This document shows positions 8,304 to 50,024 of a stretch of 63,913 nucleotides of DNA, piece after piece. Each line of letters begins with the position of its first letter. Position 1 is the stretch's first letter. A model generated the notes under the pieces. That model ran no database searches and was not told the origin of the DNA. It saw nothing but the letters and a program-made list of their open reading frames with translations. Made by a program: the position numbers and the translations under genes. The DNA is from Salpingoeca rosetta (lineage: Eukaryota; Protista; Choanoflagellata): positions 851,813 to 915,725 of the forward strand of contig JAWQFM010000018.1 in assembly GCA_033442325.1 (NCBI GenBank). Direction: 5' to 3'.

Positions 8304-8340
8304 GTCAATTTTGCCTTATTGCCTCAAAGGCAAATTTGAC
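8304..8340. promoter_or_regulatory. Candidate promoter motif GTCAATTTTGCC (8304-8315) plus an inverted variant GGCAAATTTGAC (8329-8340) in the SNX / coiled-coil gene divergent promoter
   Basis: The same 12-mer occurs at 34005 and 50013, each between head-to-head start codons. Confidence 0.65.
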
Positions 8341-8387
8341 ATTCCAGCGCTGGCAACGACGACCCACAACAACGGCAAGCAAGCAAG

Positions 8388-11300
8388 ATGGCGGACGATG
8401 ACAAGCACCACCAGCAACACACACACCACCACCAACACCAGCAGGAGGAGCAGGAGGATAAGCGCGTGTGGTGTGCAACATGTGGGCGGTACGAGGTGCC
8501 GGGAGATCCTGGCCCTGCGGTGATTCGCGTGGGCAGCGCCCCACCGCCGCTCAGTCACCATCAGCAGCACCGACAGGGGTACCCGTCTGACATTCCACCA
8601 CACGAATTCTACAAGCATTACCCGCAGTACCTGCTCCAGCACTCGCGTCACTTGCGAGGAGGCCACGTGCACTTGCAAGTGGTGCCCTCAATGAGTGACC
8701 AGCACCCCACAAGCACAGGTCGGGCCAGTGGCGATGCCCCTGCCGCCCACGACGACACAGAGAGCAGCACCGTGGATGAGGAGCGCAGCCTGATTGGAAA
8801 GCCATCACTGGAAGTCATCAGCCAGCCTCCATTGCTGCCCACCTTGGAAGACGATGCCCTCACGTGCCTCTCCTACGTCAATCGCACCAACGAAGTGCTG
8901 CGAAACTTCCAGGTGGGCCGACTGTGCTTGCGGTATTGTTGTTGTTGTGGTTGTTGTTGTTGTTGTTGTTGTTGTTGTTGTTGTTGCTGCTGCTGCTGTT
9001 GTTGTTGTTGTTGTTGTTGTTGTTGTTGTTGTTGTTTAAGTTGTTGTTGTTGTTGTGGTTGTTGTTGTTGTGGTTGTTGTGGTTGTTGTTTAAGTTGTTG
9101 TTGTTGTTGTTGTTGTTGTTGTTGTTGTTGTTGTTGTTGTTGTTGTTTTGTTGTTGTTGCTGCTGCTGTTGTTGCTGCTACCTTTACACATGTCACTATT
9201 CTTGTTGTTGCTTTACTCACCCGGCATCCCCCCAAACCCTGCACATCATCCCGCATCGTGCACACAGAGCAACGTGGCTGTGATGCTGCGCCAGGCTGGC
9301 GCTGAGCACCAGAGCGAGGCCCTGTTCCGGTTCGTGCCGCCACAGCTCGGAATCGCCGCCCAGCAGCTGGAGTCGCTGCGGAGAGAGGCAGAGACACAGC
9401 ACCTTCAGGTGTGTCTTGCGAGCAGGTTGCTTAAAACAAAACAAAACTACCATCTCGACACATGCGCGCGTGTGTGTGCATTTGTGTGTGTGCTTGATGG
9501 ATCACCATGAACCAACGGGTGATAACCCGTGCTTGGTGTGTTTGCGTCCGTGCTGCAGGTGCGTGTGGCCCCAGAACTTGACAAGCTGCTGCACATCTGC
9601 GTGGAGCTTCTGAGCCGGTCAGTGGACGCCCAGTGGTAGTGGTGGCGGGGATCATGGGCGGTGGCGATTGCGGCGGCCGGGGGGGGAGGTTGTGCGATGG
9701 TCATCGCCGACAGCAGCCCGTATGAGAACGCTCGCACGAACACACCCACACACACACACACACGCACGCACACACACGCACGCACGCACGAATCATCTCA
9801 CCTTTTTGTTGAACCATGTGTATGCCATATGACCCTGCCCTGGTCCACACCACCCGCAGAGTGCAACATGGATTCCAGCGAGCCCTGGAAGCGTTGCTGG
9901 CGCAGGTCGGTGTGTGTGTGTGCGTGTGCGCGCGCGCGCGTGTGTGTGTGTGTGCGTGTGCCTGCGTATCCTTGCTGTTCCCCTTCCTCCTCCCACCACC
10001 ATCTCCTCCCTAACATGTACACACACACACACACACTACACGCAACATCACTGCCCATGCCACATCTCCACAGGACAAGAAGCTGATCCAGGATTTGGCG
10101 ACAGAGAACGCGGAGCTGCGGGACACTCTCCAACGGCAAGCAGAGGATATCGATGCTCTTGACGCAAAACGTACGCGCAGCATGTGATGCGACAAGCGCT
10201 GCTGTCTTCACACACCACACACACACACACACTAACCAACCCACTCTTTCTCTCACACACCACACACACACACTAACCAACCCACTCTTTCTCTCTCTCA
10301 GAAACACACACACACTAACCAACCCACTCTTTCTCTCACCCCAACACACACACACACACACACATTTCTCTCACTCCCTCAACACCCGTCACTCCCCCTC
10401 TTCTGCGTGCAGTGTATGCTGAGCAACAGCGGCACAGCGAGGTGCTGTACATGTGGCCGTCAATGTCCAACGACGCGCTTGTTGCAAACAAGATGCGCGA
10501 TCTTCAGCGCGCACACAGACAGCTGCAGACAGCGGTGCGGTGCTTGCACGCATGCTGGTGGTGGTGGTGGTGGTGGTGGTGGTGGTGGTGGTGGTGGGAG
10601 GAGGAGGAAGATTACTCGTGGTGTATGTTGACATATGCCTTGCGACATGAATGTGTGCGTGCGCGCGTGTTCTACTCGCTGTCAAGTGCGGTACCACTGC
10701 TGTTGGTACATCCATCATAGCTCTCACATCACATTTCCTTTTCTCTTCAACACCACCACCACCACCACCACCACCATCACCATCACTTCACCATCACCAG
10801 CACGAGGAAGCCCTGACGGAATTGAGTGAACTGCGACGCGAGAACAGAGAACTGAAGAAAACAGCAACAGCAGCAGCAGCGGCAGCAGCAAATGGTGGCG
10901 GGGGTGTGACGGACACGTACAGTGTGGGCAGTCACAATGAGGGTGTTACTGGCACACCAGCAAGAGGTCGACAAAAGGGTGCAGATGCAAGTCGTTTGAT
11001 TGCTGGCAACAGCAGTGGCGGTGGTGGTGGCGATGGTGACAATGGCAGTAGTGGTGGTGGTGGTGGGGTACGTGCACCCCATGCTGCCGCCGCTACAAAG
11101 CCGAAAGGAACGACTATTGTACATGTGCCTGGAACCAACATTGGTGCTGATGGCGATGGCGATAATGAGGAGGAAGAGGATGTTCACACCGCCGTCAATG
11201 TGTTCCGAGGTATAGTCCCCGTTGCCGACGATGATGATGATGATGATGATGATGATGATGATGATGATGACGTGCGTGTGTGTGCTGTATTTTGCTTGCT

Positions 11301-47100: not shown

Positions 47101-49904
47101 GCTTCTTCTTGAACTTCTCCATCTCCTCCTCCGTGTAGAAATCGCTCACAGCCTAAACCCAATGGAAAATGACAGGGTTGCAGTGTGGGTGTATGAGTGG
47201 TGTGTGTATGAGTGATGTGTGCATGATATGTGCGTGCGCGTGCGTGTGTGCGCATGTAAGTGTGTGCGTGCGTGTTACGTGTGCACATGTGTGATGTGTG
47301 GACATGCGTGTGCCATGTGCATCGGAGGTGTCGTACGTTGTGCTTAAACTCGAGGGATTCAGCCTGCAGGAGCCGCTGGCGCACTTCCTCCTTGCGCTGC
47401 TCCTCACTGCTCTTCTCATCCTGAGATGTGGTGGTGGTGATGATGGCGGGTAAGGTAAGGGGTAACCACTCTCATTTACAAACACACACACACCATACTG
47501 AGCGAGGCAATTGCACGAACCTCAAAGCCGATTCTGAAGGTTTTTGTTTCCTTGAGCTTCTTGTCGCCCGTGAGCGAATCAATGTCGTCGTATTTGTCCA
47601 GAACACTCTTCTTTTTCTGCACACACACACACACATACACACATACACACATACACACACGCACGCACATGTCAAAGGTTGGGGTGGTGGAGGAGGAAGC
47701 GCAGTGAGCGGTGAGAAAGAGGGCAAGTTGAACGGACGTGAGTCGAGTTGCATTGTCTAGAAGAGTGCAGATAGAAACACCCACCCACCCACCCACACAC
47801 ACACACACACACACACACACAAACACACACACATACACACACGCACACACGCACACACACACACACACTCGCTCTCTCTCTCTCTCATTCCCCTATTCAT
47901 TCCCCTCCCTCCGCCCGCACTCTCCAAGACCATGGGTGCCCCACCAGGCCGAGCAGGGTGTCTTCGTCGTCGTCGTCCAGCCCGCGCTTTGGATCGTAAC
48001 CGCCACTGCGCTGCGCCTCCGCAACCCGCCGCTTCGCCTGGACAGACAGGTGGTGGTGGTCGTGGTGGTGGCGGCAGTGGTCGTGGTGTTGATATGTGGT
48101 GTCGTGTGTTAGTCGTGTTGTCGTTGATACGTGGTGAGTGAGTGAGTGAGTGAGTGAGTGAGTGAATGAGTGAGCGAGTGAGTGAGTGAGTGAGTGAGTG
48201 AGTGAGTGAGTGAGTGAGTGAGTGAGTGAGTAGGTAAGTGAGTGAGTGGGAGAGAACGGAAGGAAGGGAAGCTGTACGTGCTGTGAATGGGCAGCAGCAG
48301 CAGGAGTTATAGTGCCATGACGCAGGTGATCTCGACAACAGGGGCGCAACGCGGATAAAGTGGCTCACGTGCTCATCCTCGGCAATGTTGACGTTGACAA
48401 GAACATCTTCCTCGTCGTCATCCAGCACACCTGCACACACGCACACACGCACGCGCGCGCACATAGCATGGAGAACACGCATGGTGAACACATGACGAGC
48501 ACCGCGTCCATACGAGAGGGCGAGAAGTGGATCGATACATACCCACACATGCGCATATGTACACATACACACATGCACACATATCACACATCTTCATACA
48601 AAGCACACATGTGCATACGCATTGAGACATGTGCGCACCCCTGTCTTCGAGGGTGAGGATGGTCTGTGCGCCCTCCTGGAACTGGTCCAAGTCGTGGCGC
48701 ACTGTCATGCCGCGTAGATCCGTCGACGTGTACTGATTGGTTCACGCACGACCCACAGTCACGCAGTGCAGAAGGAAGGGGTGGAGGAGCAGCAGGTGAG
48801 TTGGCATGGCACCAGCACCAACGTTGACTTCAAAGACAACGTTGGCTGTACAAACACACACGCACGCACACACGCACACACGCACGCACACATATGCGCA
48901 CACACACACGCACACATTCACACACATACATACACACCTCCTCTTGTTTGATGGTTGGGTTCTTGCTGCCCTTGCGCTTCCTGCTGCTGCCGCCGGCGCT
49001 GGCGCTGGCGCTTGAGCTTCCAGTGAGCTGCTCATCCATATCCTGGAGCATCTTTGCCTGCCGCTGCGCCTGTTTCTTGGCACGGCTGCGTTTCACCCAC
49101 GCCGCCGCGCTGTCATCGTCGTCGTCGGCCTCGCCCAGCGTCTTGACAGATCGCAGCTTGGCCTCCACCGACCGCTTCTCCTTGCGCTCCTTCAGCTTGT
49201 CGCGCAACTGCAGTGGTGACAGCGTGAGCACAGTGAGCTTTGGTCGGCACGCGGGCTGAGACGCGATGCAGCCACAACAAACAGCACAGCGAGACGAACG
49301 TGTCTCGGACACGAACAGTGACGCATGCATGACAAACAAACCTCGGCCTCGCGCTGCTTCTCTCCAGGTACAACTGGCGCTAGGAGCACGTCCGTCTCCA
49401 TGGAGCTCTGCCCTGGCTTTGCCTCTCTTGGCTCTGTTATGAAGACAACCAGCAATTGTCATTGTGTGAGTCAAGTCACGCCACCCATGAGCGTGTGTGT
49501 GTGTGTGTGTGTGTGTGTGTGTGTGTGTGTGTGTGTGTGTGTGTGTGTGTGTGTGTGTGTGTGTGTGTGTGTGTGTGTGTGTGTGTTGCGAAGCGAGGTA
49601 CAACTGTGCGATGGACGTACCATCATCGCCACGCAGTGGAGCGAGACCGAGCTTGGCACGAAGAGCATTGCTCTCCTCCACATTGAGGGAAATCTCCTCA
49701 GCCGCTGCAAGGGGGTGATTGTGAGTGAGACAGCAGTTGGTGAGCAGCAAACATATACAATGGCGTACACGTGTCGCGTGTGCTTTGTGCTCGTCGCACA
49801 CCGCCTGTCTTTCCGTGCACAACCCACACCCACAATCACAACCACATCTACCCATCCACCATCCATCTAACCCATCCACCCACCACCATCCACTCACATG
49901 ACAT
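44144..49904 (-). CDS. SART1: U4/U6.U5 tri-snRNP-associated protein 1 (SART1/Snu66)
   Basis: MS|[24 protein letters not shown] (HIND motif), VKTLGE..SAAAWV, GMTVRHD..ILTLED|[33 protein letters not shown]-terminal [34 protein letters not shown]...MSSEDTPL. Confidence 0.95.
45838..45942. repeat. (GAGT)n tetranucleotide microsatellite in a SART1 intron
   Basis: Directly visible. A similar array lies at about 48135-48245. Confidence 0.9.
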
Positions 49905-50012
49905 GATGGCTGGCTGGTTGGTTTGCGCGTCCTCTTCTTCCTGCTCTTCTCTTCTTGCTGCTCCTTGCTTGTTGCTTGTTTGCTTGTGTTCTTTGTGGGC
50001 GTTCGCAAGAAA

Positions 50013-50024
50013 GTCAATTTTGCC
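50013..50024. promoter_or_regulatory. Candidate promoter motif GTCAATTTTGCC in the SART1/PSPH divergent promoter
   Basis: Exact match to the motif at 8304 and 34005. Confidence 0.65.

Follow-up and report, generated by a model that had tools for sequence, protein, structure and literature searches.

Three Short Divergent Gaps in Salpingoeca rosetta

The stretch of DNA considered here, called the window throughout, comprises 63,913 bases of the choanoflagellate Salpingoeca rosetta (assembly GCA_033442325.1, contig JAWQFM010000018.1, positions 851,813 to 915,725 of the forward strand). It contains three pairs of genes that are transcribed away from each other across short gaps: a sorting nexin (SNX)-type gene and a coiled-coil-type gene at gap 1, a 526-amino-acid (526-aa) gene and CAPZB at gap 2, and SART1 and a HAD/PSPH gene at gap 3 (Table 1). 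The same 12-letter word is present in all three gaps. It is probably an undescribed promoter signal of a close relative of animals, and with confidence that is about evenly balanced we take it, in the orientation GGCAAAWTTGAC, to be a directional core-promoter element of S. rosetta, located at or just after the transcription start site.

The gene calls are those of the public annotation of scaffold GL832971.1 (GCA_000188695.1), where the window position equals the record position minus 851,812. They were obtained for 24-60 kb of the window, with names from Pfam where given. A search with SART1 returned the S. rosetta protein, and its encoding locus on this scaffold is identical to the window over the compared part, which takes in the gap between SART1 and PSPH and the beginning of SART1. 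Look-ups by exact protein returned loci inside the window only; the genes near its ends contain many introns. These calls confirm the start codons that the original prediction, made from the sequence alone, had assigned at 33965 and 49904 on the minus strand and at 34190 and 50069 on the plus strand. Those at gap 1 (8129, minus; 8388, plus) are in line with both the sequence and the stranded RNA coverage.

Recurrence of the 12-Letter Word

The word is found exactly three times in the window as GTCAATTTTGCC, each time on the plus strand, and all three copies lie inside the short divergent gaps, which together account for 1% of the window. Only 0.02 copies are expected, and none of 100 dinucleotide-preserving shuffles reached three, which bears out the earlier claim that three exact copies would be very unlikely to arise by chance. 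The word is the single one of more than seven letters common to the three gaps; its 8-mers are almost absent from the remaining window, and shuffled gaps acquired a common 10-mer in none of 3000 trials. The recurrence of GTCAATTTTGCC is real and far beyond chance.

The copies might nevertheless be functionless, whether by coincidence, as remnants of a dispersed repeat or as duplicated promoters. Such an origin would be easier to accept because there are three loci only, and because microsatellite-like introns give random segments of the window common 10-mers. These shared 10-mers, frequent as they are, come only from such repeats, however, and GTCAATTTTGCC is not of that type and is not of low complexity. 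The flanks of the three exact copies are mutually unrelated, which rules out a longer repeat or a mobile element. Together with the excess over expectation, the confinement to 1% of the window and the fact that one copy marks a mapped start, this makes an origin without function very improbable.

The original prediction had placed the three exact copies correctly, and likewise two variants, the inverted copy GGCAAATTTGAC at 8329-8340 and the near-palindromic GTCAAACTTGAC at 33979-33990. The degenerate dyad GKCAANNTTGMC has seven matches in the window against 0.58 expected. Two of these are outside promoters, at 5698 in an apparent intron of the PXA/SNX gene and at 48381 within the range of the SART1 gene, and are most likely due to chance. 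The directional form GGCAAAWTTGAC is more selective: its four perfect matches are confined to the three gaps (646 bp in total), outside which the window holds no match with one mismatch. These four strong copies have an identical asymmetry, one half containing GGCAA and the other GTCAA. The shorter GGCAA is itself enriched: the window rate of 1.18 per kb per strand predicts about 1.5 in the gaps, which contain 11. All those of gaps 2 and 3 are on the minus strand.

The promoter association of the word is supported, since all strong copies lie in short divergent gaps and, at one site, RNA 5' ends coincide with the edge of a copy. The further statement that the word is present in all of the short divergent promoters holds for 24-64 kb of the window, where gene calls exist, and is verified for that part only.

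RNA 5' Ends at Site 1

Transcription starts were mapped in one interval, 7750-8950 of the window, using three stranded raw RNA runs (X21, X22 and X23) and one set of RNA contigs (X4). In these libraries the first mate is antisense; first-mate-minus reads therefore report the plus-strand gene and first-mate-plus reads the minus-strand gene.

Plus-strand RNA has a depth of 0 in the bin 8283-8323 in all three runs and is present from the bin 8324-8364 onwards. Fragment 5' ends cluster at 8329, the first G of GGCAAATTTGAC, where they account for 7 of a depth of 11 in X22 and 8 of a depth of 16 in X23. No joint or loose end is found at this position, so that 8329 is not a splice acceptor. A second cluster lies at 8353 in X22 (12 molecules) and at 8354 in X21 (5 molecules), which are the second and third letters of GGCAAC.

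For the minus-strand gene, coverage fades out in the bin 8283-8323. A spliced X4 contig, from which the intron 7890-8055 has been removed, ends at 8321, and RNA contigs do not cover 8322-8394. Position 8321 is the third letter of the minus-strand GGCAAT; the first G of the exact copy (8315) follows 6 nt downstream. Each of the three observed ends thus coincides with one of the first three letters of a GGCAA in sense orientation. This suggests that the word, read as GGCAAAWTTGAC, points into the gene and occupies about +1 to +20 of the transcript, where +1 is the transcription start.

No TATA box (TATAWAWR about 25-30 bp upstream of +1) is present upstream of 8329, where the sole A/T-rich stretch (-22 to -16) is formed by the neighbouring copy's core. 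A classical initiator, which would read TCA+1ATTTTGCC at the exact copy, was ruled out, given that there is no plus-strand RNA to the left of 8324 and no start at 8307.

Antisense-oriented (first-mate-plus) reads were also observed across 8324-8446, roughly the first 120 nt of the plus-strand mRNA, at 10-45% of the sense depth, compared with a leak of 2-3% further in. This signal is probably in part cross-mapping from other loci onto a CAC/CAG-rich stretch, with loose ends at 8443; the remainder may be the known antisense artefact of complementary DNA at mRNA 5' ends or a short antisense RNA.

A Directional Element or a Symmetric Site

Because the RNA 5' ends at site 1 fall in sense-strand GGCAA, the word is read as GGCAAAWTTGAC with GGCAA facing upstream. 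In the mechanism that we favour, the GGCAA end would face upstream of the gene and the transcript would pass through the word. The element would determine the start site and may mark a subset of TATA-less promoters, here those of very short divergent gaps; its most likely binding partner would be the general initiation machinery or else a sequence-specific factor setting the start of RNA polymerase II. The three exact copies would then serve the left-hand genes, namely the SNX-type gene, the HisRS-like 526-aa gene and SART1. Since the GGCAA sequences of gaps 2 and 3 are all on the minus strand, CAPZB and PSPH would use another start signal. In gap 1, the back-to-back copies would form a mirror-image two-way promoter with start regions only about 8-14 bp apart.

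Several points weigh against a directional start-site element. Starts were mapped at one site only and by ordinary RNA sequencing without cap selection, with about 15 molecules for 8329 and 17 for 8353/8354, and the minus-strand end is the end of an RNA contig and hence approximate. The starts are on G, and not on the pyrimidine-purine step of known initiators. Copies are absent within 400 bp of the ATG of the Pex13, 960-aa, aminotransferase, SH3/SH2 adaptor and E2F genes, and the long divergent gap 59263-60824 has none. These five promoters without a copy limit the element to a subset of promoters; the general housekeeping or bidirectional element that had been proposed at the outset does not agree with this distribution. 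Finally, the copies at site 1 are 25 bp apart, and each mapped plus-strand start also lies 13-14 nt past the neighbouring copy. Owing to this spacing, a symmetric element about 20 bp upstream fits the starts of site 1 nearly as well.

Such an element would be a quasi-palindromic site, GNCAA-NN-TTGNC, at which a dimeric factor would bind about 20 bp upstream of the starts and fire transcription both ways, which is close to the idea of the original prediction. The word does have a dyad form, and the 33979 variant comes close to a perfect palindrome. Counted from the ends of the two copies of site 1, the plus-strand starts are 14 nt (8329) and 13 nt (8353) further on, and every strong copy is in a divergent gap, with none in tandem promoters. 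However, the same asymmetric halves are found in four out of four strong copies, minus-strand RNA extends to at least 8321 where 8315 or 8290 would be predicted, and the long divergent gap has no copy. We regard this alternative as rather unlikely, though deserving of serious attention. The element behaves as a directional word, with GGCAA reading towards the gene in all four strong copies, which differs from a plain symmetric dyad; nothing tested supports or rules out a dimeric factor.

The word might also act in RNA rather than in DNA, as an mRNA 5' signal for translation or stability like the TOP or TISU elements. At site 1 it is indeed transcribed, forming the first 12 nt of the plus-strand mRNA and, in the minus-strand mRNA, lying within roughly 20 nt of the 5' end. 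We found no evidence for a role at the RNA level, however, and any hairpin formed by the short dyad would be very weak. That RNA 5' ends coincide with GGCAA indicates start-site choice instead, and a signal acting in RNA seems improbable.

Comparison with Known Promoter Elements

One close functional likeness of a directional start-site element is the initiator (Inr), of which the metazoan (YYANWYY/BBCABW), Trichomonas (TCAYW) and oomycete forms are examples. Initiators are recognised by TFIID (TAF1/TAF2) and keep a fixed position relative to +1 in many promoters. Common to these and to the S. rosetta word are directionality, an association with TATA-less promoters and a lineage-specific sequence, and at the one mapped site the word overlaps the start (8329, with 8353/8354 inside GGCAAC). 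In contrast to the initiators, the start is on the G of GGCAA and not on an A after a pyrimidine, and the word is 12 letters long and conserved exactly.

A second likeness is to start-site-proximal housekeeping motifs that have dedicated binding factors, namely Drosophila Motif 1/M1BP and DRE/DREF and the vertebrate ZNF143 and YY1 sites, each of which is a long, exact and orientation-specific word near +1 in a subset of TATA-less promoters. The resemblance to the Motif 1/M1BP type extends to the presence of the word at broadly needed genes (a spliceosome factor, a likely tRNA synthetase and a sorting nexin), whereas the sequence is unrelated. An oriented word within about 20 nt of +1 at a TATA-less promoter is seen at site 1; for sites 2 and 3 we infer the orientation.

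Animal bidirectional promoters carry motifs such as those of GABP/ETS, NRF-1, NF-Y and YY1, and the word resembles these in being limited, within the window, to head-to-head pairs with very short gaps. However, the start regions of animal bidirectional promoters are about 100-200 bp apart, compared with about 8-14 bp here, and the word differs in sequence and is missing from the long divergent gap.

It is also conceivable that the word is the site of a known factor family (RFX X-box half sites, the TALE homeodomain TGAC, CHR/LIN54 or the WRKY W-box) that co-regulates these genes. ATTGAC partly overlaps PBX-MEIS sites, and TTGAC(C/T) the plant W-box. The W-box core noticed in the original prediction is present on the minus strand (TTGACC at site 1, TTGACT at sites 2 and 3); this likeness stands as a six-letter overlap only, and nothing bears on a WRKY factor. 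The CHR/CDE class (DREAM, LIN54; TTYGAA) belongs to promoters of cell-cycle genes, which the present genes are not, and its core is not within the word, which has TTTGAC or ATTGAC; elsewhere in the window there is a separate E2F/CHR-like word.

The RFX X-box of choanoflagellate ciliary genes has the sequence GTTGYCA, or GTNRCC N0-3 RGYAAC in full (Coyle et al. 2023, PMC10530576). It is likewise start-site-proximal in S. rosetta promoters, has the letters TTGCC/GGCAA in common with the word, and its half site GTTGYCA is overlapped by TTGCC (PMC10530576). The full RFX consensus differs from the word, however, which has GGCAAA first and TTGAC second, so that the halves are everted and in the opposite order, the leading GT is missing and there is no GTTGCC. 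The genes are, moreover, not ciliary. The resemblances to RFX, W-box, CHR, TALE, C/EBP, NFI and CArG sites were all rejected as overlaps of 4-6 letters only, RFX being checked against Coyle et al. Regulation by one of these families appears slightly more doubtful still than a signal acting in RNA.

The word works most like an initiator or the start-site-proximal housekeeping motifs, but departs from the sequence definition of the Inr in its starts on G; our verdict is that it is probably a lineage-specific core-promoter motif. Full-text literature searches, both for the word in its two orientations and for core- or bidirectional-promoter motifs of choanoflagellates, returned only primers and unrelated uses, which is consistent with its having been called undescribed. 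The papers on the chromatin, 3D genome and RFX of S. rosetta name no start-site motif, and the chromatin and RFX papers describe regulation as promoter-proximal.

Gene Map of the Window

The features of the gaps and the genes of the window are collected in Table 1. The name HisRS for the 526-aa gene is that of the original prediction, and the only Pfam match in its favour is weak and below the cut-off (E 0.0011). In the first 24 kb, Pfam scans of the open reading frames (ORFs) gave the PXA domain as the sole match, and the codon-usage map of this part is noisy because of low-complexity repeats.

Table 1. Divergent gaps, copies of the word and genes of the window (window coordinates)
Feature	Position	Strand	Genes, remarks and basis
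Divergent gap 1, 258 bp	8130-8387		PXA/SNX-type gene (ATG 8129, -) / coiled-coil-type gene (ATG 8388, +); sequence, PXA domain, stranded RNA coverage of both genes
Exact copy, GGCAAAATTGAC on minus strand	8304-8315	-	Points to SNX-type gene; minus-strand RNA depth 1-2 in bin 8283-8323
GGCAAT	8318-8323	-	Likely 5' end region of SNX-type mRNA; approximate (contig end)
Inverted copy GGCAAATTTGAC	8329-8340	+	First G is the most upstream start of the plus-strand gene
GGCAAC	8352-8357	+	Contains second start cluster of the plus-strand gene
Divergent gap 2, 224 bp	33966-34189		526-aa gene (-) / CAPZB (+); gene calls
Near-palindromic variant GTCAAACTTGAC	33979-33990		Two mismatches to the motif on either strand
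Exact copy, GGCAAAATTGAC on minus strand	34005-34016	-	Points to 526-aa gene; implied 5' untranslated region ~51 nt
Divergent gap 3, 164 bp	49905-50068		SART1 (-) / HAD/PSPH gene (+); gene calls, Pfam families; SART-1 domain on minus-strand ORF
Exact copy, GGCAAAATTGAC on minus strand	50013-50024	-	Points to SART1; implied 5' untranslated region ~120 nt
Second GGCAAA	50044-50049	-	25 nt upstream of exact copy at 50013-50024
PXA domain	5308-5958	-	Gene left of gap 1; Pfam scan of ORFs
CDC20-type WD40 gene	end at 26573	+	Public gene call
Pex13	26807-29049	+	Public gene call
526-aa gene	30040-33965	-	Public gene call
CAPZB	34190-36308	+	Public gene call; name from source
960-aa single-exon gene	36977-39859	-	F-box/LRR-like by Atlas look-alike search
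Aminotransferase	41209-42993	-	Public gene call
SART1	44144-49904	-	Public gene call
HAD/PSPH gene	50069-52139	+	Public gene call
SH3/SH2 adaptor	53547-59262	-	Public gene call
E2F-domain ORF	start 60825	+	ORF with E2F domain

Three of the genes have early introns: in CAPZB the donor follows the start codon directly (ATG|GTGAGC, 34190), SART1 has ATGTCATGTGAGTGG, and the SNX-type gene has the intron 7890-8055, whose splicing is seen in stranded RNA. With introns placed straight after the ATG or within the first few codons, lists of ORFs running from ATG to stop are misleading in the S. rosetta genome. The long ORF from 8388 enters a (TGT)n-rich intron (8913-9267), where translation would give a poly-cysteine tail; the true donor, according to RNA reads, comes after 8912 and is joined to 9268.

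The 960-aa F-box/LRR-like gene has a tRNA-Val(AAC) gene (39946-40020, minus strand) located 87 bp upstream of its start codon on the same strand, which fills the place where its promoter would be expected. Runs of N at 40522-40621 and 43750-43849 are intergenic, lie more than 6 kb from any copy of the word and are crossed by no called gene. They are irrelevant to the recurrence of the motif, although they could hide promoter sequence of the 960-aa and aminotransferase genes.

A Second Word and Other Species

Another exact 12-mer, GCGAAATTTGAA, is found twice in the window, at 23233-23244 on the plus strand and at 59681-59692 on the minus strand. It joins an E2F-like TTTCGC to a CHR-like TTTGAA and fits the CHR class better than the word of the divergent gaps. 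The copy at 59681-59692 is located beside TTTCGCGGGG in the long divergent gap that precedes the E2F-domain gene, while the one at 23233-23244 lies in DNA that is richer in A/T and may be upstream of the CDC20-type WD40 gene. GCGAAATTTGAA looks like a cell-cycle promoter element separate from the 12-mer of the short gaps.

Homologues of SART1 and of a CAPZB exon were searched for in other species. For SART1, the search returned choanoflagellate proteins derived from transcriptomes, without DNA; for CAPZB, with too strict an E-value cut-off, it returned three proteins only and no DNA of another species. A scan of metagenomes for the inverted pair gave 18 hits, all of them hairpin-like inverted repeats in ORF-dense, prokaryote-like contigs. 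As the inverted-pair pattern is a hairpin by construction, these hits say nothing about choanoflagellates. Several of the contigs (among L004, L009-L012, L019 and L021) carry one conserved 39-nt inverted repeat between ORFs, in which 12-letter arms identical to the motif variant GTCAAATTTGCC flank a 15-nt spacer. This repeat probably represents a hairpin conserved among related bacteria, without connection to the choanoflagellate element.

Implications for Transcription Initiation in Choanoflagellates

Salpingoeca rosetta serves as the principal model in experiments on the closest living relatives of animals, and a description of its core-promoter signals was not found. With a defined start-site word one could approach the question of how the choanoflagellate lineage specifies initiation, and predict start sites in a genome whose annotation relies mostly on coding sequence. 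Such a word would also provide a concrete bait for the factor involved and help in the design of compact one-way or two-way expression cassettes for transfection.

It is tempting to speculate further that choanoflagellates own a strand-specific initiator that starts on the G of GGCAA, and that two such words placed back to back make a mirror-image core promoter with opposite starts about 8-14 bp apart. This extension is tentative, and we consider it less likely to be true than false. If true, the opposite starts would be much nearer to each other than those of animal bidirectional promoters, and one short piece of DNA would have to serve two initiation complexes that overlap and exclude each other. 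Back-to-back starts at so small a distance would then offer a case for studying two initiation complexes on one nucleosome-free region.

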